This document shows positions 1-39,037 of a stretch of 64,000 nucleotides of DNA, piece after piece; the first letter of the stretch is position 1, and the number at the start of each line of letters is the position of its first letter. Where the stretch lies: IMG/VR virus record IMGVR_UViG_3300043436_004687, positions 124,001 through 188,000 of that record; one strand, 5' to 3'. The translations under genes were made by a program, and so were the position numbers. The notes under the pieces are model-generated. The model was not told where the DNA came from and made no database searches. It saw only the letters and a list, made by a program, of their open reading frames with translations.

Positions 1-390
1 AGCTTCTTTATATTTTGGAATATTGGGGTTGCAGTTAATTAATGGAGTATAACCCTCTGGTAAAGAAATTACTTCAGAAATTAGTGGTATATTATCTTCT
101 GTTTTGTAAATTGGGTTTACTAGGGAATAATCTTTTAAGTTTTGTGATGTCCCAAATCTTTTTATTAACTTAGGTAATGAACCACCCATATTATCAGTAT
201 CATAACAAGACCAACATCTAAATTTATTTTTAATGTAATTTACTTCTAAATTATGTTTACCATCACCTTTTGTTAGACCCTTATTAAATGCACATGCTGG
301 GCAATCATATTGCAATTGCCCAGAATCCTCATTATGATAATGAGGTTCACCTAAAAAACTATCTAATATATTTACAATTAAATGTGACAT
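1..390 (-). CDS. DNA primase, N-terminal zinc-binding region (partial, runs off window)
   Basis: Not in ORF track; manual translation from ATG at 390: MSHLIVNILDSFLGEPHYHNEDSGQLQYDCPAC...HNLEVN...FRCWSC, open to base 1. CxxC...CxxC zinc ribbon typical of phage DnaG-type primases. Confidence 0.75.
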   Translation of the reverse strand, partial: MSHLIVNILDSFLGEPHYHNEDSGQLQYDCPACAFNKGLTKGDGKHNLEVNYIKNKFRCWSCYDTDNMGGSLPKLIKRFGTSQNLKDYSLVNPIYKTEDNIPLISEVISLPEGYTPLINCNPNIPKYKEA

Positions 391-489
391 TTTATTATAT
401 TTTATTCGGAATGTATTACGTATATTCCGATCTTAATGGTGTTAAGTGTTTATTTTATTGGTGTTGATGAGTGTGTTTACATATAGGTG

Positions 490-669
490 TTATACGTCAG
501 TTTGCTTAATCAAGCCTTTTGGCATATAACATTTAGTGCAATACAAATCACCGAAGCGTGGATGAACAGCAAACTCGTGGTCGCAAACCGAACGTATAAC
601 ATTGGTTTGTGGCAAGTGCGGTTTCTGAGGTTTAACCAACTTTAGTGCTTCTAATAATCTTCGTATCAT
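490..669 (-). CDS. 59-aa small protein with putative zinc finger, cassette-borne
   Basis: Manual translation: MIRRLLEALKLVKPQKPHLPQTNVIRSVCDHEFAVHPRFGDLYCTKCYMPKGLIKQTDV*; CxH...CxxC motif; A-rich leader. Confidence 0.6.
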   Translation of the reverse strand: MIRRLLEALKLVKPQKPHLPQTNVIRSVCDHEFAVHPRFGDLYCTKCYMPKGLIKQTDV

Positions 670-726
670 AATTTAAGTTTTGTACTTTTAATTCCGCACC
701 TGACCACAAGCCAAGTGCCGTTAGCA
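594..726. mobile_element. attC-like integron cassette recombination site
   Basis: GTATAAC (594-600) ... GTTAGCA (720-726) cores; imperfect inverted arms TTGGTTTGTGGCAAGTGCGG (602-621) / CCGCACCTGACCACAAGCCAA (694-714) with one bulged base; higher GC than surroundings. Confidence 0.7.
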
Positions 727-1041
727 GTCATTGCGCAACAACTTAATGTCTTTAACTAGGTTTACAACTGTTTTCATCCAATCTTCTTTAAGTATTCCTG
801 CATCATATTTTAACACAAATTCTGCATTCTCTATCATGTTATCTAATTCTGCAATATTATAATGCAACGAACTACTAACAGCATTTTCATACAATTTCAA
901 GGCTTGGTAGTTTTTAGCAAACTGAATTACTAAATCAATTGCTTTTGAAAGTTCTTTTGGTTCAGCCATTGTAACTTCTTCTGAACCTTTTCGCCATTTA
1001 TTATGGTTTTTTAAAATTTTTATTGCTTTTTGAATTTTCAT
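721..1041 (-). CDS. hypothetical protein, cassette-like
   Basis: 106-aa ORF (HNKWRKG...PKELSKAID); its TAA stop lies in the attC core. Confidence 0.7.
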   Translation of the reverse strand: MKIQKAIKILKNHNKWRKGSEEVTMAEPKELSKAIDLVIQFAKNYQALKLYENAVSSSLHYNIAELDNMIENAEFVLKYDAGILKEDWMKTVVNLVKDIKLLRNDC

Positions 1042-1087
1042 AATTTTTGTGATTTTTAGTGATTAATATTTGCAACTGTCTATAACC

Positions 1088-21559: not shown

Positions 21560-22648
21560 TTAAGTTGAACAACCGAAACAATCAAATTGACTGTCTTTAG
21601 GTTTTTCAATTGTTTTATTATCTAACACACCTAGTTTATTATTAGATTCTAATTTTGATTTAGTTCTAGTATAATAAACACCCGTTTTTAAACCACCTTT
21701 CCAAGCATACATTAAAGCACTTGATATCTTAATATATTTTGCATCGGAATGATACATATTTAAAGATTGAGATTGATCTATAAATTTATTTCTAATTATG
21801 GCTAATTCTAATAAAGTTTTTTGAGATATTTCCCAAACATCTTTATATCTAAATCTAATATCTTCAGGAATTTCTAAAATATTTTGAACACTACCCTTAT
21901 TTTTTAAGAATTTATCTTTAATATCTTGATTCCATAAACCTAAATCAATAAGTTCTTTAACTAAATATTTATTTATCACTAAAAATTCACCTTGACCAAC
22001 TCTTCTGGTAAACATATTTGAAGTTGGTGGTTCAAAAGATTCGAAAACACCTAACAAAATAGCGCTTGAAGCTGTTGGCATATTACCGAGGAATAAACTA
22101 TTAACGAGTCTTATAGGTAAACCATCTTTAATTGGTGACCATCCATTTATATAGGTTTCACCTCTTTCATATTTACTACCACCCCAGGCTGGATATACTT
22201 TATTAAATTTCTCAGCTAATCTATTAGATTCTGAAACAGCTGCTTTATACATAATTTCAGAAATCTGACTATTCCATTGTTTTGCTTCATCAGATTCAAA
22301 AGATATTTTTTTCTTAGCAAAAAAATCGGCCATACCAGCTACGCCAATGGCTATAGCCCTTTGATCTTCACCAGCATTTTTACTCCATTCATCACTCCAT
22401 TTATTTTTATCAATAACTTTATTTAAAGCTTTAGTTAATATTCTAGTACTATTTTCAATACTATCTAATGTGGAATGGTTTGCTAAATTTATTGAACCTA
22501 AACAACATTGTGGTGTGTATCGAGGCTTTGAAGCTTGCATAATTTCACAATTATGAACTAAAACATTATTAGCATAAAAGTTATTAGTATTAGCTACTTG
22601 GATGTCATATACATCCATTTTTTTATTTATTTTATTAATTTTAATCAT
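21560..22648 (-). CDS. nrdA: ribonucleotide reductase alpha subunit, C-terminal fragment, led by split-intein C part
   Basis: After VLVHN comes CEIMQ; CCLGSINL, MPTASSA, DQSQS, GLKTGVYY, terminal CFGCST. Confidence 0.92.
   Translation of the reverse strand: MIKINKINKKMDVYDIQVANTNNFYANNVLVHNCEIMQASKPRYTPQCCLGSINLANHSTLDSIENSTRILTKALNKVIDKNKWSDEWSKNAGEDQRAIAIGVAGMADFFAKKKISFESDEAKQWNSQISEIMYKAAVSESNRLAEKFNKVYPAWGGSKYERGETYINGWSPIKDGLPIRLVNSLFLGNMPTASSAILLGVFESFEPPTSNMFTRRVGQGEFLVINKYLVKELIDLGLWNQDIKDKFLKNKGSVQNILEIPEDIRFRYKDVWEISQKTLLELAIIRNKFIDQSQSLNMYHSDAKYIKISSALMYAWKGGLKTGVYYTRTKSKLESNNKLGVLDNKTIEKPKDSQFDCFGCST
22550..22648 (-). mobile_element. split intein, C part (33 aa)
   Basis: MIKINKINKKMDVYDIQVANTNNFYANNVLVHN|C: block F and terminal His-Asn followed by Cys+1. 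Confidence 0.92.
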
Positions 22649-22656
22649 ATTTATTT

Positions 22657-23856
22657 TTAATAGTTAACATATTCAAATTTAAATCCTTTGTAGGTTTTAT
22701 TTCTTCCTTTACATACAGCTAACACAGATGTTATTTTACCATCTATATATTCAGCAGCTAATTTTAATGAATCAAATACAAGTTCATTATCATCTTTATC
22801 AATTCTTTTGACTTTTCTTTGGTTATTACCAATTTTAATATCAAATGTGTAATCTTTATCTTCCCATCTAAAAATTTTGGTCTTCTGATTATTGTTTTTA
22901 CATTTTCGCCTAATAACTGTTGAATTAAATCCAGTGGCTTCACTGGCATCAAAAACATTATTAAAAAAAAATTCATTTTCACTACTAATACATTCCTTAT
23001 AGTAAACACCTTTAGTTATTCTAACAAGACCATTTTCATTTTTTTTAAAACCTTTAGGTGAATCATTTACTGGTTTAACATAATCAGGTCTTTTAGTTTT
23101 AACTAACACTAATTCAGTATTAAGATATTTAAAAAAATAACCATTATAACTACCACCATATAAAATACATCTATACACAAGGCTTTTAGTTTTAATATTG
23201 TATTTTTTAATTAAATCAATTATATTTAAAATATCAATTTCTTCTAAAGTTTTAGCATCAATAACAACTATTTTATTCATTGGTCTAATTTTAGCGTTTT
23301 CTTTCATTTTATTTATAGTTTCTTTACTAGCTTTTCTACCTTTATTCCAATGAACCCCATTTAATTTAGATAAATAAGATGGGTTATTTATTAACGGTCT
23401 ACCATACATTGGGTTATTTACCCCAATAGTATTAAATTTATGTTTTTCTCTAATTTCTTCTTTTCTAGGATTATTACTGAATGTGTCACCTCCAGAACCA
23501 CCTATAACTATATTAGTTAATATACCAGAATCAGAATATCTACCATAGTAATTAATTAATTCTTTTTCAACTCTAAAAGCATTTTCTTCATTATCAGTTT
23601 CAAATACAATACTAAAATTTGGTTTAAAACCTAATATTATTAATTTTTTAATAATATTAGTTTTATGTGGATTACTTTTAGATCTTTTATTATTTAAAAT
23701 TGTATCTGAATAATGAGTTAAATGTCTCTGATTTTTATTTTTAGCTTCATAATCACCCTTACCAACATAAAAAGGTTTATAACTTATTTTAGAATAATTA
23801 TTACTATAATTACCTTCTACTCTATCATCTAATAAAATGTATACATAATATCTCAT
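22657..23856 (-). CDS. free-standing GIY-YIG-family homing endonuclease with NUMOD-type DNA-binding repeats (start revised to MRYYVY)
   Basis: YYVYILLDDR...PFYVGKG...R...AFRVEKELI...LTN; NNPMYGR (NUMOD3-like); C-terminal FDSLKLAAEYI...VCKGRNKTYKGFKF (NUMOD1-like). Confidence 0.8.
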   Translation of the reverse strand: MRYYVYILLDDRVEGNYSNNYSKISYKPFYVGKGDYEAKNKNQRHLTHYSDTILNNKRSKSNPHKTNIIKKLIILGFKPNFSIVFETDNEENAFRVEKELINYYGRYSDSGILTNIVIGGSGGDTFSNNPRKEEIREKHKFNTIGVNNPMYGRPLINNPSYLSKLNGVHWNKGRKASKETINKMKENAKIRPMNKIVVIDAKTLEEIDILNIIDLIKKYNIKTKSLVYRCILYGGSYNGYFFKYLNTELVLVKTKRPDYVKPVNDSPKGFKKNENGLVRITKGVYYKECISSENEFFFNNVFDASEATGFNSTVIRRKCKNNNQKTKIFRWEDKDYTFDIKIGNNQRKVKRIDKDDNELVFDSLKLAAEYIDGKITSVLAVCKGRNKTYKGFKFEYVNY

Positions 23857-23859
23857 ATT

Positions 23860-23910
23860 AATAAATATGCAGTACATAGTATAAAATACACAACACACTG
23901 CATATTTATT
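23860..23910 (-). promoter_or_regulatory. 14-bp hairpin over the endonuclease initiation region
   Basis: AATAAATATGCAGT (23860-23873) / ACTGCATATTTATT (23897-23910) perfect inverted repeat ending 3 nt before the ATG. Confidence 0.65.
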
Positions 23911-23913
23911 TTT

Positions 23914-25386
23914 TTAATTAAAATTTACATCTAATTCATCATCCTCAAGTAACTCACAAGCCATGACATAACCTCTATTTTTAGTAAATATTCTATGGTC
24001 AGGTGTACAAATTAATTTAATACCTTTTTTATCATCAATTATTTCAAGTACTTCAGCGTTTTCTTTTGTTTTAATAGCAGCTAATATTGGTTGAAACGTA
24101 TTATTTTGACTCAAAACTTGTAAATTATTATCTTTAAACCTACCAACAATATTTTCCATACTTACTTTTTCAATACCACCATTTTCATTCATTATCGTTA
24201 TATTAGTTTCACCACCTAAACAACAAAGATTTGATTGTGATATTGTCCCAATATTATCTTGCATATTAATTCTATTAGCGTTATCTTTAAACATAACGTA
24301 AGGTTTACCACTTTCAACTTGTGATTTTATAATAGCATCTAAAATATCTTTTGGGTTAACTTTTTTACCTAAACCTAAATCCACTGCTTTTTGATATTCA
24401 ACTTCAAACTCATCACCCCATATAGTATGGAATGGTTTTAACCCATTTTTAATAATATCATTAGGACAAAACAAATACCAATCCTTACCTTGCTCAAGAT
24501 TTTTCATGAATAAATCATTAACAATGGCAGCTGTAAATAAATCTCTAGTCCTCATTTGTTCATCACCAACAGGTAAAGTTAATTCTAAGAAATCAAATAT
24601 ATCTCTATGCCAAACACTTAAATATAATGCACAACTACCAGATCTATCACCTTGCTTATAAAATCTCATTTTAGATTGTACCATATCAGCTAATCTAACA
24701 ATACCACCAGCATTATTGTTAAAAGATGAAACCATACTTTCTTTACTTCTAAGAGGATCAATAAGTAAACCAATACCAGAACCTTCTTTAGAACCAAAAG
24801 CTATTTTTGTTAGTGTATTTTCTATCTCATCTATACTATCACCTTCTAACATCGTTAGATTACAACTAATCATACCATTTCTACTATCTATACCAGCGTT
24901 AGTATACGTAGGAGTTGCAAAATTAATTTTTTTACTTTCTAACTCATTTAATAATTCATTTTTATCTTCATAATTATCCTCATATAAAAAAGAAGAAACT
25001 CTATTATACATGCATGAAGGTAATTCTATAGGTGTTTTTTTATTTTCTTTTTTAGAATACTTACTTAAAAAAGTAGTTGCAGCAAAAAAATCATAAGTTA
25101 AATCAACATCTTTTAATGGTTTATTAATCAATTTTGATTGTCTACTTAAAAGTATTCTACCACCTAATAAAGAATAATCTGGATGGTCTAATATTTTATC
25201 AGCAGATTTAAAAGCAATTATTTCATCAATTTCAGTTGTTGAAATCTCATCCGAAATTAAAGGAATTACTTCCTGAAATAATAAATCAGAATCTATTTGT
25301 AAACCTTTAGCTTGATCTTTAATTCTAGTTAAAAGTTTGTTTGGCATAAATGGTTGTAAAACACCACTTCTTTTTTTTATTTTCAT
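23914..25386 (-). CDS. nrdA: ribonucleotide reductase alpha subunit, N-terminal fragment, ending in split-intein N part
   Basis: ATP cone MKIKKRSG; ATPTYTNAG, MISC, GSGIG, QGDRSGS, ESGKPY, SQSNLC. Confidence 0.92.
   Translation of the reverse strand: MKIKKRSGVLQPFMPNKLLTRIKDQAKGLQIDSDLLFQEVIPLISDEISTTEIDEIIAFKSADKILDHPDYSLLGGRILLSRQSKLINKPLKDVDLTYDFFAATTFLSKYSKKENKKTPIELPSCMYNRVSSFLYEDNYEDKNELLNELESKKINFATPTYTNAGIDSRNGMISCNLTMLEGDSIDEIENTLTKIAFGSKEGSGIGLLIDPLRSKESMVSSFNNNAGGIVRLADMVQSKMRFYKQGDRSGSCALYLSVWHRDIFDFLELTLPVGDEQMRTRDLFTAAIVNDLFMKNLEQGKDWYLFCPNDIIKNGLKPFHTIWGDEFEVEYQKAVDLGLGKKVNPKDILDAIIKSQVESGKPYVMFKDNANRINMQDNIGTISQSNLCCLGGETNITIMNENGGIEKVSMENIVGRFKDNNLQVLSQNNTFQPILAAIKTKENAEVLEIIDDKKGIKLICTPDHRIFTKNRGYVMACELLEDDELDVNFN
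23917..24222 (-). mobile_element. split intein, N part (102 aa)
   Basis: CLGGETNI (block A) ... LICTPDHRIFT (block B TxxH) ... ELLEDDEL, then stop. Confidence 0.92.
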
Positions 25387-33706: not shown

Positions 33707-36700
33707 TTATTTTGTTTTTATATTACCTAAATATTTTAATGGTGTTTTAGGTAGTAATTTAGCGTTGAAATTATCCAATTGACCAGTTTGTGTTGCATTA
33801 AATGTATTTAAATCATTTTCCGATATTTTTTTAACAACCTCTATTGGTGGGTAAAATGACATATGAATATGATTACTATGACCTTCTTCAAATTTAACTA
33901 TACCATTAAAATAATTAATTAAATTATCATCATTTAAATAAATAGTTTTAATTATTTTATTGTCTTTCCACCCCTTATAATTTTTTTGAGTATCTAAGAA
34001 TAATTGAATTAAATTTTTATTACCTTCGGATGAATAATTACCACTACCAACCTCAACTTTTATCTTACCATTAGTTTTAATATTACTAATTGGTCTAAAA
34101 TCAATCGCTAAACCTGCTTTATGGTCAAAACCTTTATGTATTTTTCTACCAGTTTTAGCATCAATTATTTGACCACCATTTATTTGAGATGCACTTGAGA
34201 AATATAACACATCATCAAATGTTTGATTATAATCACCATTATTATTTTTCTTATTCCAAAGGTTTGCAACATATTCTATAAATTTAGCAACCTCTTTAAT
34301 CATATAATCATGATTATTATTACTTTGTCTTTTTAAACCATAATTTTCTTGTATTTTATAAGTTACAAAACTAGAATATTCATTAACATCTATTGGTAAA
34401 CTAACGCCCTCGGTTGAAACACCACTAAGATAATCAAATTGATTTAAAAATATTGTAGTATCATCAATCATTTTTGGTTTTTTAGCTCTAGTTCTAATAC
34501 CAGTAAAATTAGTAATCATAGTATTAGGTGTAATAACATGGTTAACTTTTATTACCATATAAGCACCTCTAAACATTGGTATGTTATTTAATTGAAAGTA
34601 CATCAATGGTTGAATCATAGCATTACCCAACATTTCAACTTTAGTTGTATAACTCCTGTTTATATAAACATCAAATAAATTTTGTCCAATAGAAGATTGG
34701 CTATTATTTATTAAATTATTTGTAATAGTTAATGATTCATCACTGGATGTGTATTCATTTTGCTCTAATTTTATATCCTTAAAAATAGATTGGTCTCCAG
34801 CACCATACTGGACTAAAAAAACGGGAATTGCGTTTTCATTACCAGAATTAAAATCAGCCAATAGTGGTGTTGTTGTACCATCAACATTAAAATCAAATGA
34901 ATCATTTTTGAAATTTATTGAATCACTCAAAGAATTTGATTTTTCGCCAGAATACATACAAATAAATTGTGGTCCACTTGATGTTTCTAATGAATTATAT
35001 GTATATACTTTAAAAACATCTTGAATATCTTTAACATTATTATAATTTATATAAGAAGGTAGTGGAAAAAAATCAAAATTATTATCTGATAAAACTCTAG
35101 ATAAATAATTATAAAAACTTTGATTATAATTATCATTTAATTGGTTAATCATAGGTAATAAATTAACTTTGAACACTTTTTGTATGTCATTATATGAACG
35201 ATCAATAAATTTAAAACTATCATATAGTTCATTATTACCTAATCCAACATATTTTTCTTCCTCACCACAAATCCACTTATCGTAAATAGATTTTATTTTG
35301 ATGTATAAATTTAATTTTATATCATCATTATTTATGTTGGTGAAAAGTTTTTCTTTTAAATCTTTTTCTTGTTTTTCAATAAGAACCTTGTCATCTTTGT
35401 TTAATTTTAAAAATTCATTAAAAAAAGCAATTAAATAATTTTCAATATCAGTTTTAACTACTCTTATAGGTGTATTAGAATTTAAATAAGTAATTTCTTC
35501 ATCCCAAATCCTCCAAGTTGAATTGACTATAACCCTACTCTCATTTAAAAAATTAAACATAGTCTCCACAGCAAAACTATTGTCTTTTAATTCTAAAAAG
35601 AAATTAAAAGGTGAACCTTTATCAGCATTCGCCAATCTAGACTTCAAATCGTTTAGTTGTAACTCTTCTGAAAACCCCTCACTTATTTTCAATAAAACAT
35701 CATAATTACTTTTTATATTTGGGTTTAATATTGAATTATTAAAAACAGCACTATTAAATAATTTTAAATCAGTATTAAAAGAATTCCAAAAAACATGTCT
35801 TTGATTTGATGTTGTGCTTGGTTTAAATATTTCAAACTGTTCTTTAATTAAACCAAAACCATTTGAAACCCAATCATTAAATAATTCAATGAATTCATCT
35901 TTAACCGATTTTGGTAATTTTAAAATTATTTCATCAATATTATTATAACTTCTATTATTAAAACTAAAATTACCATGAGGACCAGCAGTAATAGTGTTTG
36001 AAATTAAAAATTGATAATTATTTGGTGAATTATCTTTTTCAACACCAGGGATAAAACTATAATTTCCATTAGAAAATTTAATAGAAAAATCACCCTTACT
36101 TCTCGATAATAAAGCACCCACAAATAAACACCAAGAATAAGGTGTTTTAATATAACCAGATTTTTGATTGAAGAATTTATTAATTAAATCCTCTCTTAAT
36201 AAACCACTACTATTAAATAAACTACCACCAATTAATCCGTTAAATGGTATTGAATGGAGAAATAAAAAAGCTTTAGCTTTAACACTATTTTGAGAATAAT
36301 ATAAATCAGACCCAAATAAAGAGTAATGTTGAAAATTAGATTTATTATTTGATATTGATTCAAAACCTAAAAAAGGAAAACTATTGTTTTTATTCAAACT
36401 AATATAATCTACAAGATTTAACGACCCTCTTTTTTTAATATAATCGGTAATAGAATAAATACTTAACTCTAATGGATTTTCTTTAATAGAATTAATAGAA
36501 AACAATTTGTTAAAGTTATTATTTACCTTTAATTCACTTGGACAATTATTTGATGAAGAAATATAATCAGGATCATAAAATAATAAATTAGTTGGAAGGT
36601 CACTAAAATTTTTATAATTTACTTTTAAGAATTTATTAGTCACCCCACCATCAATAATGTTAACATTAGCATCAATAGTATTAATTTCAGTATTAACTAT

Positions 36701-39037
36701 CGAATTGACATAATTAAAATAGTTATTATTTAAATCAATATCTTTAACTATTTTAATGTATGTTGAACCATTATCAATATTTGAATTTAATGAACCTACA
36801 TAATTACTAAAAAATAATTTATTATTTTCTCTTAAACTAACCTTATCATTATCTTTAACATTTAAAAAATTACCATAAAAAGATTTATAAGTTTCATTTA
36901 TCGATAATGGAATAAAAGATCTATTTACGTTTGAATTTATGAGATCTATAATATAATTATAAGAATAAACTTCTCTTGTTTCACCAGCTATGTTACTACT
37001 AACTTTTTTAGTAAATATTGATGATTTAATAAAATCAGAATAAATATAACTTTCAGTATAATTTTTAAAATAACTTGTTTCACACAATTTTATTACCCTT
37101 TCACTAAATTCTTTAGGTGAATTTGAAAAATTTTTAAAACCCAGTTTAATTACATCATTTATTATATTAGAATATAAATTATTAGCTTCTAATTTAGCCA
37201 TATTATTAATTTCGGTATTATTTAAAATACCTAATTTATTAGAATACCCTAAATAAATAACAGAACGTAAAATTATTAATAATAAATAATCATCAATTAA
37301 AGCATCATTTTTTAAATAATTATATGAGTTCTCTAAACCAAAAAAATTACTATCAAAAACATTTATTGGTGCCCATTGTTCTTTAATTACTGGAGAATTT
37401 AAAATATCAATCGTTTTTTCATCCTCAATACCAGATTTAATAATACCATTTAATAAATCTTCAATAAATTTAACCTCTGGGATATTAGGTGCAACTTTAC
37501 CTATCCATTTATCTACCATTACACCATCAACTAACTCTGAATAACTTGGGAAAGCTTTTAAATTTTGTTTTTCACCATCAATTACATCTAAAGAATCTAA
37601 ACCAATTTTACTTAAATCAGATAAACGTTGAGTTGGATTATTTTCAGCTAGAAAAGCAACTTCTTTTATACAATCCATAAATATATCAATATGATCACAT
37701 ACTAATTTTATTATATTACCAATTGTTGGTGAAAAATCGGAAGAAGTTTCACTAATTTCATTTATTTCTTGACTTAATTCTGGTAATATAATATTTATTT
37801 GTTCTTCAAGTTCATTAATAAAATTTTCTAAATTATCTAAAACTTTACCAACAAATATAATACTTCCATTATCGGTGGATAAACTTTCTATACCTCTTTC
37901 TAATCTATCAAATTGATTTTCACTTAAATTAAATTCATTTCCTTTATTAAAATCCTCTAAATTATTTGGTATATTGATAAAAAACCCTTCAATCAAATTA
38001 GTTTTTTTATTAATTAAAAAATCATCTTCTCTTAATTCTTTACCAGTTAAATATATATTAACATTCTTAACTAAATCGGATATAGTTTTATTAGTATCAG
38101 CTATTAAATTAGTTATTTTAGAATAAAAAATATCATTCCCATTAGTTCTTCTTATAGTACCAGGAAAATGATAAAAACCATAGTTGAAATTCTCTTCACT
38201 ATTTAATAATAATATTTTTTTATATGAATCTCTAAATTCTTTTAATGGTGAAATAGCCTCATTAATTTTAGCATACTCTTTCACTCTAATATTATTATTT
38301 TTTATATTGTTAATATTAGTATTTATTTGAGTTAATACTGAGTTTAATTCTGAAAAAGAATAATATTTAAAATCTTTATTAAGATTATTTTTTTTCTTTT
38401 CTTCTAATTTAATTTTACCCAATCTTGTATATGAGATACCTTTTAAGTGACCCATCATAATATCACTTAAAAAAGCATAAGTATAACCAATAAAACTACA
38501 TTGTACTTCAAAGTTACCTGAACTATAATCAAAACCACCAGTAAATTTTTGTAGGTGTAATTTATATTTTACAGCCTTACCGTAATAACCCTTTATTGTT
38601 AATTCAAAAATAGGATAAGGTAATTCAAAAAAAACACTGTAAGGTGAATCTTTACCTAATTCAAATAACTTACCTCTAGTATCTGTAAAATTTATAATTA
38701 CAATTGGTGCGTTAGCTGAATTAAATTCAATATTTATATCTTTTATACCTAAAGTTTCTAAATCTTTATTTTTAGAATTAAAATCACTATTCAATTCCGT
38801 ATAATGTGTAGTTAAGTATTTTACATTATTATTTAAATCACTCCCACCCAAAAAAGATATTAAAGTTGGTTTTTCACCTGTGTATATAATAGTTTTATTA
38901 CCTGAAACACCTATAGCACTTCTATTTTTTTTTATCGCAGTTAATTCAACACTTATAGATAATTGTTCTGGCGTTATTACATTATTAACACCAAATTCAG
39001 TGTTTTTATTTGGATCTATTATTTTAATATTACTCAT
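33707..39037 (-). CDS. very large baseplate hub-like protein with C-terminal Zn murein endopeptidase-like domain
   Basis: N-term FFELPYPIFELTIKGYYG; VEMLGNAMIQPLMYFQL..GAYMVIKVNHVI hub-like motif; C-term HKAGLAIDFR...GHSNHIHM. Confidence 0.6.
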   Translation of the reverse strand: MSNIKIIDPNKNTEFGVNNVITPEQLSISVELTAIKKNRSAIGVSGNKTIIYTGEKPTLISFLGGSDLNNNVKYLTTHYTELNSDFNSKNKDLETLGIKDINIEFNSANAPIVIINFTDTRGKLFELGKDSPYSVFFELPYPIFELTIKGYYGKAVKYKLHLQKFTGGFDYSSGNFEVQCSFIGYTYAFLSDIMMGHLKGISYTRLGKIKLEEKKKNNLNKDFKYYSFSELNSVLTQINTNINNIKNNNIRVKEYAKINEAISPLKEFRDSYKKILLLNSEENFNYGFYHFPGTIRRTNGNDIFYSKITNLIADTNKTISDLVKNVNIYLTGKELREDDFLINKKTNLIEGFFINIPNNLEDFNKGNEFNLSENQFDRLERGIESLSTDNGSIIFVGKVLDNLENFINELEEQINIILPELSQEINEISETSSDFSPTIGNIIKLVCDHIDIFMDCIKEVAFLAENNPTQRLSDLSKIGLDSLDVIDGEKQNLKAFPSYSELVDGVMVDKWIGKVAPNIPEVKFIEDLLNGIIKSGIEDEKTIDILNSPVIKEQWAPINVFDSNFFGLENSYNYLKNDALIDDYLLLIILRSVIYLGYSNKLGILNNTEINNMAKLEANNLYSNIINDVIKLGFKNFSNSPKEFSERVIKLCETSYFKNYTESYIYSDFIKSSIFTKKVSSNIAGETREVYSYNYIIDLINSNVNRSFIPLSINETYKSFYGNFLNVKDNDKVSLRENNKLFFSNYVGSLNSNIDNGSTYIKIVKDIDLNNNYFNYVNSIVNTEINTIDANVNIIDGGVTNKFLKVNYKNFSDLPTNLLFYDPDYISSSNNCPSELKVNNNFNKLFSINSIKENPLELSIYSITDYIKKRGSLNLVDYISLNKNNSFPFLGFESISNNKSNFQHYSLFGSDLYYSQNSVKAKAFLFLHSIPFNGLIGGSLFNSSGLLREDLINKFFNQKSGYIKTPYSWCLFVGALLSRSKGDFSIKFSNGNYSFIPGVEKDNSPNNYQFLISNTITAGPHGNFSFNNRSYNNIDEIILKLPKSVKDEFIELFNDWVSNGFGLIKEQFEIFKPSTTSNQRHVFWNSFNTDLKLFNSAVFNNSILNPNIKSNYDVLLKISEGFSEELQLNDLKSRLANADKGSPFNFFLELKDNSFAVETMFNFLNESRVIVNSTWRIWDEEITYLNSNTPIRVVKTDIENYLIAFFNEFLKLNKDDKVLIEKQEKDLKEKLFTNINNDDIKLNLYIKIKSIYDKWICGEEEKYVGLGNNELYDSFKFIDRSYNDIQKVFKVNLLPMINQLNDNYNQSFYNYLSRVLSDNNFDFFPLPSYINYNNVKDIQDVFKVYTYNSLETSSGPQFICMYSGEKSNSLSDSINFKNDSFDFNVDGTTTPLLADFNSGNENAIPVFLVQYGAGDQSIFKDIKLEQNEYTSSDESLTITNNLINNSQSSIGQNLFDVYINRSYTTKVEMLGNAMIQPLMYFQLNNIPMFRGAYMVIKVNHVITPNTMITNFTGIRTRAKKPKMIDDTTIFLNQFDYLSGVSTEGVSLPIDVNEYSSFVTYKIQENYGLKRQSNNNHDYMIKEVAKFIEYVANLWNKKNNNGDYNQTFDDVLYFSSASQINGGQIIDAKTGRKIHKGFDHKAGLAIDFRPISNIKTNGKIKVEVGSGNYSSEGNKNLIQLFLDTQKNYKGWKDNKIIKTIYLNDDNLINYFNGIVKFEEGHSNHIHMSFYPPIEVVKKISENDLNTFNATQTGQLDNFNAKLLPKTPLKYLGNIKTK

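Follow-up and report, generated by a model that had tools for sequence, protein, structure and literature searches.

Integron gene cassettes are mobilized through attC sites, imperfect hairpins lying between inverse cores, and the folded bottom strand of an attC site carries RYYYAA|C at its 5′ foot, where IntI cuts, and GTTRRRY at its 3′ foot (PMC3458562). Clusters of attC sites lacking an integrase (CALINs) have been reported in virulent phages: a screen of 10,705 phage genomes found 17 CALINs, among them two predicted attC sites in Polaribacter phage P12002L (Qi et al. 2023, Front Microbiol, PMC9892861). Of the six sites tested in that work with IntI1, P12002L_attC1, which was found by HattCI but not by Infernal, was the one that gave no verified junction, whereas sites from Pseudoalteromonas and Tetrasphaera phages recombined at G|TT. 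Two further systems bear comparison. Promoter-early stem-loops (PeSLs) are mobile regulatory cassettes of T4-type phages (Arbiol et al. 2010, PMC2839356; Comeau et al. 2014, PMC4122927); they combine a sigma-70 early promoter with a terminator-like stem-loop and are thought to recombine by homology. IS200/IS605 elements and REP/RAYT repeats pair a tetranucleotide with an adjacent imperfect hairpin recognized by an HUH (Y1) enzyme, as for IS608, whose target is TTAC.

Here, we describe a hairpin-bounded, integron-like gene cassette next to the primase gene of a lake-water giant phage, and the large, almost undescribed family of phage cassettes to which it belongs. We searched the literature for descriptions of this family as such, its tiled arrays, its mobile unit, its inverted gene orientation, its conserved wobbles and its natural breakpoints, and found none.

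A hairpin and two small reading frames ahead of a phage primase gene

The window analysed here is a 64,000-nt stretch of IMGVR_UViG_3300043436_004687, a 339,635-bp viral contig from lake-water metagenomes, with window position 1 at contig position 124001. It encodes a T4-like set of replication and tail genes: family B DNA polymerase, gp32-like protein, DnaB-like helicase, RecA-like protein, ribonucleotide reductase, tail sheath and gp25-type baseplate protein. Overall GC content is 26.4%, and all genes near the locus lie on the - strand. The features of the locus are as follows.

1-390 (-): 5′ part of the primase gene, a flanking host-phage gene that is not part of the element
489-719 (-): mobile unit 1, hairpin plus body, 231 nt and 39.8% GC
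489-492: core (GTTA on +, TAAC on -), 3′ end of unit 1 and stop codon of the 59-aa ORF
489-505 (-): 3′ terminal inverted repeat of body 1
490-669 (-): 59-aa ORF, which starts in the hairpin loop, reads through the 3′ arm into the body (a C-x-H...C-x-x-C motif) and stops in the core at 490-492
583-600 (-): 5′ terminal inverted repeat of body 1
597-600: core (TAAC on +, GTTA on -) between the hairpin 3′ foot and body 1
597-723 (-): attC-like hairpin of the type we call type B, 127 nt core to core
603-621 (-): 3′ arm of the hairpin in the gene sense, also encoding residues about 17-22 (HLPQTN) of the 59-aa ORF
694-714 (-): 5′ arm of the hairpin in the gene sense, followed by the unpaired spacer at 715-719
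720-723: core (GTTA on +, TAAC on -), 3′ end of body 2, 5′ foot of the hairpin and stop codon of the 106-aa ORF
720-1086 (-): body 2, 28.6% GC, with the 106-aa ORF (721-1041, -; stop at 721-723) between the family-type ends GTTA-TAGA-CAGT.. (1086-1072) and ..TGACTGCTAAC (734-720), and no hairpin upstream

An earlier note, made from the sequence alone, had described 489-1086 as an integron-like cassette array just upstream of primase, with an attC-like hairpin, complementary cassette ends and two small ORFs stopping in a core. Each of these sequence statements was confirmed, and the 59-aa and 106-aa ORFs both use the TAA inside a core as their stop codon. Read in the gene sense, the hairpin consists of TAAC, a spacer of G plus 4 nt, an 11-bp stem, a bulged C, A-T and G.T pairs, a 6-bp GC stem, a 73-nt loop, the return arm (the two arms contain one bulge and one mismatch) and TGTTA. 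It folds better than shuffled sequence as DNA or RNA (z-scores of -2.5 and -2.8, respectively). At the ends of body 1, GTTATACGTCAGTTTGC (489-505) and GCAAACCGAACGTATAAC (583-600) pair over 6+8 bp around a small internal loop, whereas the ends of body 2 (720-734 against 1072-1086) pair only loosely (4+4 bp gapless). The short end repeats alone are not above chance, with about 2.7 such pairs found per 6 kb of shuffled sequence, though the hairpin is (0.2 expected); the significance of the locus comes from its relatives. The window holds only one hairpin, and a search of the 64 kb for more type-B copies returned none, making this a one-to-two cassette outpost rather than a long array. The ORF running off the left end of the window is a DnaG-type primase; the full ORF (locus L002, 5001-5951) matches PF08275 DNAG_N at 31.5 bits.

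Searches for known RNAs and known proteins returned little. tRNA and tmRNA searches gave no hit, and Rfam, which has no attC model, gave only a chance miRNA hit (E 0.14). PHROGs and Pfam gave nothing for the 59-aa and 106-aa proteins, which matched only unnamed clusters in a protein atlas. Megablast and blastn of the locus against GenBank phages found no match, and tblastn with the 59-aa and primase pieces gave nothing useful. The N-terminal 39 aa of the 106-aa protein match proteins of Cellulophaga phage phi13:2 and the Polaribacter Freya phages, and the phi13:2 homologue, gp035, lies directly in front of a hairpin of the family described below.

The 231-nt unit is discrete and foreign to this phage

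We next asked whether parts of the locus occur in other contexts. The 59-aa protein has a 93% identical homologue (P0001) on an unrelated 9.4-kb JGI phage contig (L003). Synonymous changes are visible in the loop (TTG>CTA, CCT>CCA). At the DNA level, window 723-489 is 93.2% identical to L003 5946-6181 (hairpin 88%, body 99%), while the flanks on both sides are at random level (about 48%). Similarity starts at TAAC|GGCAC and stops at ..CGTATAAC, exactly at the cores. The unit has 39.8% GC and is therefore foreign to this phage. By contrast, body 2 has native base composition and no hairpin of its own, and may be a resident gene whose TAAC end serves as the insertion point.

A second protein (P0002), on contig L004, shares only the hairpin-encoded first 22 residues. 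L004 shares the hairpin alone, switching immediately after GTTA to a different body whose own two ends are complementary; other contigs likewise diverge from the window at this core (597-600).

A polar hairpin family in Bacteroidota phages

The exact 19-mer of one hairpin arm occurs in 10 further IMG/VR contigs, each time behind ..TAAC and in front of GTTA plus a different body. A pattern for another hairpin subtype finds at least 120 viral stretches and 108 stretches in GTDB genomes, the latter overwhelmingly Flavobacteriales, Chitinophagales, Sphingobacteriales and Cytophagales, many on short MAG contigs that are probably phage or prophage. In about 2 Mb of fetched loci, drawn from IMG/VR contigs, Bacteroidota genome contigs and cultivated Flavobacterium, Cellulophaga and Polaribacter phages, we counted 384 hairpins of the form TAACG...GTTA. 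Only 3 of these also pass in the opposite orientation, so the element is polar.

In many loci, hairpins (60-130 nt) and bodies (about 110-1100 nt) tile perfectly and share the tetranucleotides, including eight hairpins in locus L008 and ten in the complete genome of the cultivated Flavobacterium phage vB_FspS_snork9-1. Shuffled controls gave about 0.2 hairpins per locus (0.1-1.6). Cellulophaga phage phi13:2 and Polaribacter phage P12002L carry family hairpins as well. P12002L did not score in our strict TAAC/GTTA scan, but by eye its intergenic regions hold short or slightly degenerate family hairpins, and the published primer table shows that P12002L_attC1 is a hairpin of this family.

To determine which features are conserved, we aligned 69 hairpins of 122-129 nt that are under 80% identical to each other, with the window copy as the first row. 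RNAalifold predicts a 19-pair stem in which 18 pairs show compensatory double changes, often with all four Watson-Crick types. In total, 95.5% of cells are paired against 65.8% in shuffles, and the covariation score is 0.686 against 0.150 (0 of 500 shuffles reach it), with partners slid by 1-3 columns giving at most 0.11. Because the hairpins were picked by arm complementarity, the paired percentage is inflated, though the register, the conserved wobble and the excess over shuffled genomes are not affected. TAAC and GTTA are invariant in 69 of 69, even where they are not stop codons, and an A-T followed by a G.T (G.U) in mid-stem is conserved in 65 of 69. The spacer is asymmetric: the 5′ foot is followed by an unpaired G plus about 4 nt and the 3′ foot is preceded by only TG (5-6 nt against 1-2 nt). 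The bulged C is optional. Wobbles are strongly biased to the gene-sense strand (about 117 G.U against about 21 A.C cells), indicating that this strand is the one selected to fold, although this bias fits an RNA structure equally well.

Family-wide, body ends are complementary within a body (mean 6.3 of 10 positions, mode 9) but not across a hairpin (3.33, equal to random pairs at 3.38), and the body stem also carries a conserved G.T.

Units differ between close relatives at the TAAC core

We then sought to determine which piece moves and where it is cut. Five Lillamyvirus isolates, which are Flavobacterium phages, are 99-100% identical over their left 12 kb but differ by insertions, deletions and replacements of whole units in the array. 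Every breakpoint lies at TAAC(G), the 5′ foot of a hairpin, with only 5-7 nt shared; often only ATAACG or TAACG is common and the sequence on either side is unrelated, though some breakpoints extend 7-16 nt into similar hairpin 5′ arms. One isolate lacks exactly one 342-nt unit (2038-2379 of the snork9-1 record), and a 527-nt unit sits behind different neighbors in two isolates. Across all loci, similar bodies with discordant flanks keep the upstream hairpin and change the downstream one in 5 cases, and the reverse in 0. The unit is therefore the hairpin plus the body behind it, bounded by TAAC| on both sides, which for the window gives 489-719, the 231-bp unit that the earlier note had delimited. 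On longer time scales, however, the same hairpin precedes different bodies, so joints also occur at the GTTA foot, which one cut site does not explain.

Gain or loss at the core in relatives had been proposed beforehand as a test of the cassette reading, and we observed it in this very phage. Contig 7 from another lake sample (X3) matches window 836-718 and 723-450 without a mismatch, with 1117 extra bases between them and TAACGG on both sides, while a third sample spans the site without the insert. An exact-protein look-up for this variant found no record, and a metagenome scan returned only an unrelated contig with a 23-nt exact match; the insert is thus known only by its length and borders. 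Together with the isolates, these joints place the crossover within TAACG, which reads CGTTA on the other strand, at a resolution of 5 nt.

Cargo genes and neighboring enzymes

Among ORFs beside the arrays, N6/N4 methyltransferases occur in 66 of 235 loci, C5 methyltransferases in 16 and MT-A70 in 14, alongside Mom, HNH endonucleases and many small unknown proteins. Variable methyltransferase content had previously been linked to plating efficiency in these Flavobacterium phages, without mention of repeats (Nilsson et al., PMC7077304). In the type-B hairpin, the loop holds the start codon and the 3′ arm encodes part of a leader of about 22 residues, which is fused in frame to unrelated cargo, including a methyltransferase in locus L014. 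Other units start translation after GTTA, according to a crude census of ORF starts in which many units went unscored and which we use only qualitatively. We considered whether this shared leader peptide might be a capsid-targeting signal, but only the type-B hairpin encodes it and other hairpins encode none, and we therefore dropped this reading.

No recombinase was identified. There is no tyrosine recombinase among the window's 42 ORFs of 90 aa or more, in agreement with the earlier note, none detected by Pfam among the early and replication genes gp001-051 of snork9-1, and none annotated among its 73 CDS. No recombinase family recurs beside the arrays, where only methyltransferases, HNH, NinG (9 loci), a YqaJ/lambda-exonuclease-like protein (17 loci) and DnaB recur; the YqaJ-like protein and NinG are general recombination functions. 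Two of 150 ORFs beside genome arrays are tyrosine recombinases, one of which is Xer/IntI-like and sits next to two hairpins on a 3-kb contig but falls below the IntI cut-off (207.6 against 265 bits). phi13:2 has a generic phage integrase (gp038) after its array. No HUH or Y1 protein was seen among frequent neighbors or snork9-1 early genes, within flanks of 8-15 kb and one complete phage.

A model for cassette movement and its alternatives

Together, these findings suggest that window 489-1086 is a small outpost of a widespread family of hairpin-bounded mobile gene cassettes of phages that infect Bacteroidota. In this view, the mobile unit comprises G, a 4-nt spacer, the hairpin, TG, GTTA, a 5′ repeat, the gene, a 3′ repeat and TAAC, and unit 489-719 was inserted behind the TAAC that ends the resident 106-aa gene, just ahead of the primase gene; an empty site would join ..GACTGCTAAC directly to ACCTATATG. 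Units would be cut and joined within TAAC|G at the 5′ foot by site-specific recombination on the folded gene-sense strand, which corresponds to the recombining bottom strand of an attC site, and after circularization the two body ends would pair with each other and lengthen the hairpin stem, corresponding to the R′′/R′ pairing of a circularized cassette. The hairpin would double as the unit's own expression leader, in the 127-nt class often holding the start codon and about the first 22 codons of the cargo gene. We assign this reading a probability of roughly 0.6. The structure, covariation, polarity, unit boundaries, natural gain and loss at the core and methyltransferase-dominated cargo are shown by our data, whereas the single-strand mechanism, the circular intermediate (no circle or excision junction has been seen) and the enzyme are inferred; we take the latter to be most likely a host or phage tyrosine recombinase that is not IntI1-like, supplied in trans.

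The interpretation in the earlier note, that the phage captures or shuffles accessory genes through attC recombination with a host or phage tyrosine recombinase, is thus supported in part. A discrete, mobile, hairpin-associated cassette with integron-like topology, breakpoints exactly at the named cores and an abundance of similar hairpins in Bacteroidota phage and prophage sequence are all borne out. Nothing, however, ties the system to IntI, the genes run antisense to canonical attC polarity, and the second proposed cassette (720-1086) may be a resident gene.

An alternative, which we consider unlikely but open, is that the hairpins are mRNA elements between early genes, acting as a 5′ stabilizer, a processing site or a platform presenting the start codon, with body-end pairing forming an mRNA panhandle and modules exchanged by general phage recombination through short conserved hairpin sequences, selection retaining only joints at module borders. 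The sense-strand wobbles, the G.T in the body stem, the start codons in loops, the common YqaJ-like and NinG neighbors, the breakpoints extending into similar 5′ arms and the precedent of PeSLs are all compatible with this. Yet several joints share only ATAACG or TAACG between unrelated sequences, too short for annealing-based recombination; all recent joints lie at one foot although the other is equally conserved; the feet are invariant even where they are not stop codons; and the hairpins have no T-run and are not terminators. Single-strand transposition by an HUH (Y1) enzyme, which would recognize the hairpin, use GTTA as a guide for two TAAC cleavage sites, excise the unit as single-stranded DNA and reinsert it 3′ of a TAAC, appears very unlikely but also remains open. 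The strict polarity, the tetranucleotide with its adjacent imperfect hairpin and the flanking TAACs, either of which a single GTTA could pair with, fit such a scheme, but no HUH gene was found in the flanks and phage noted above, each unit has one hairpin rather than one at each end, and the cut lies at the hairpin foot rather than at a distance from it. Chance palindromes in AT-rich intergenic DNA could account for the short end repeats in the window alone, but are refuted by the hundreds of relatives, the covariation, the tiling and the breakpoints.

A more far-reaching possibility, which we regard as tentative, is that phages of Bacteroidota possess their own cassette system parallel to integrons, in which a folded gene-sense DNA hairpin with fixed TAAC/GTTA feet and conserved G.T wobbles serves at once as recombination site and expression leader. 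It would be moved by a recombinase not yet recognized (not IntI1-like, host- or phage-encoded) and used mainly to shuffle anti-restriction genes such as DNA methyltransferases between unrelated phages, from 38-kb siphoviruses to a 340-kb giant phage.

Phage genomes are mosaics, but the machinery that moves single accessory genes between unrelated phages is mostly unknown. This family offers a precise, sequence-defined unit of exchange with hundreds of natural examples, cultivable model phages and hosts (Baltic Flavobacterium phages) and isolates that already differ by whole units, and it raises the concrete question of which enzyme acts on the TAAC foot of the folded strand. It links integron biology, so far essentially bacterial, to virulent phages of a phylum where integrons are little studied, and its methyltransferase-dominated cargo suggests how phages keep up with host restriction systems. 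The hairpins are also easy markers for finding phage accessory-gene islands in metagenomes.

Comparison with known systems

Like PeSLs, these hairpins are conserved intergenic stem-loop modules flanking small, variable early genes in phage hyperplastic regions, close relatives differ by whole modules, and the phage studied here is also T4-like, with the site between replication genes. Here, however, the stems covary with invariant TAAC/GTTA feet, joints share only 5-7 nt, no T-run follows the stems and the bodies have matched inverted ends. With IS200/IS605 elements and REP/RAYT repeats, the family shares a tetranucleotide plus an imperfect hairpin, strand polarity and non-autonomous copies that would need an enzyme in trans, but its units have a single hairpin, carry protein genes and form tiled arrays.

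The closest match is to integron cassettes and, in particular, phage CALINs, which lack IntI by definition, though membership in the integron family in the strict sense is not established. The hairpin falls within the range of attC sites (about 57-141 nt) and shares their conservation of structure rather than sequence, with paired arms, an unpaired spacer, a bulge and a mismatch. AAC and GTT (in fact TAAC and GTTA) are invariant, while the remaining core positions do not follow the RYYYAAC/GTTRRRY consensus; in the window, GTATAAC matches 6 of 7 positions and GTTAGCA 5 of 7. The recombining Pseudoalteromonas and Tetrasphaera phage sites have similar ATAACG...TTGTTAT cores. No IntI or attI has been found, and the complementary ends are longer (about 14 nt) and carry a conserved G.T. 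As in integrons, there is one site per cassette, the cassette start is complementary to the start of its own site, and arrays of small accessory genes are rich in DNA methyltransferases. Natural joints within CGTTA agree with the G|TT crossover. On the strand opposite the genes, the array reads GTTA, body, TAAC, hairpin and the next GTTA, which is cassette-then-attC topology, but with the genes inverted, so that each hairpin lies in front of its own gene and often holds its start codon. The published work reported two sites in one phage, not the family, its unit or its breakpoints, and its site P12002L_attC1 is a member of this very family.

Coding potential of hairpin loops and leaders

In alignment A3, the hairpin alignment that includes the window copy, loops of the 125-nt hairpin class carry one or two copies of a conserved motif, roughly ACAAAnGTTnAA, within loop columns about 35-100 (window 622-693). 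In type-B hairpins, the type found in the window, one copy lies directly in front of the start codon. This motif could be a protein-binding site, a translation signal or a promoter element.

The leader encoded by the hairpin (MIRRLLELLKLVKPRQPHLPQTNVSGS and variants) is fused in frame to quite different proteins, as seen next to the type-B hairpin in the fetched loci L005, L007, L008, L011, L013 and L015, and related hairpins with different stems still encode ..QPxLxQxxVS... In locus L014 (1180-2036), which keeps only the 5′ arm of the type-B hairpin, a different leader ending in ..DVSGS runs in frame into an N6 adenine methyltransferase. Changes in the leader are conservative, which suggests that it is translated.

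A short sequence match and family hairpins outside the window

The last 23 nt of body 2 (GTTGTTGCGCAATGACTGCTAAC), the body that carries the 106-aa ORF, occur exactly in an otherwise unrelated 2.1-kb metagenome contig (Ga0190271_10175011, L130 927-949), where they lie upstream of a bacterial-looking gene. This match may have arisen by chance in a very large collection, or may represent an orphan cassette end.

In Cellulophaga phage phi13:2 (L250/L251, record about 12.7-20.8 kb), we observed a run of small genes that each end in ..TAACG, with one full family hairpin (L250 2816-2865) and a DNA methylase. This run is followed by a tyrosine integrase (gp038) and, further on, by an ArdA anti-restriction gene. 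Many of the hairpins in this region look degenerate, with only the 5′ half kept.

Other features of the window

Within the window itself, the ribonucleotide reductase large subunit is fractured across 21560-25386 on the - strand, with the following parts:

23914-25386 (-), ORF holding the ATP-cone, the N domain, the first about 213 barrel positions and an intein N-part
22657-23898 (-), ORF for a free-standing GIY-YIG (LEM-3-like) endonuclease
21560-22648 (-), probably the second ORF with the barrel domain and an intein match

A second ORF with the barrel domain and an intein match exists among the 42 ORFs scanned, though its placement at 21560-22648 is only probable. This arrangement would be a split intein with a homing endonuclease gene in between. 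Several very large ORFs on the - strand have no Pfam match at all:

33707-39037 (-), ORF of 1776 aa
42889-45357 (-), ORF of 822 aa
9079-11331 (-), ORF of 750 aa
3452-5554 (-), ORF of 700 aa

Comparison with integron integrases and attC sites

A lead for the missing enzyme comes from L064, a 3.1-kb Bacteroidia MAG contig on which a 378-aa Xer/IntI-like tyrosine recombinase (1611-2744, - strand) lies next to two family hairpins (408-582 and 1070-1159). This protein passes the NF040815 profile (223.6 against 220 bits) but falls below the cut-off of the TIGR02249 integron integrase profile (207.6 against 265). With regard to the sites, the attC sites cloned from Pseudoalteromonas phage PH101 and Tetrasphaera phage TJE1 (PMC9892861, supplementary Table S3) also have ATAACG...TTGTTAT feet, and the hairpin type may therefore extend beyond phages of Bacteroidota.
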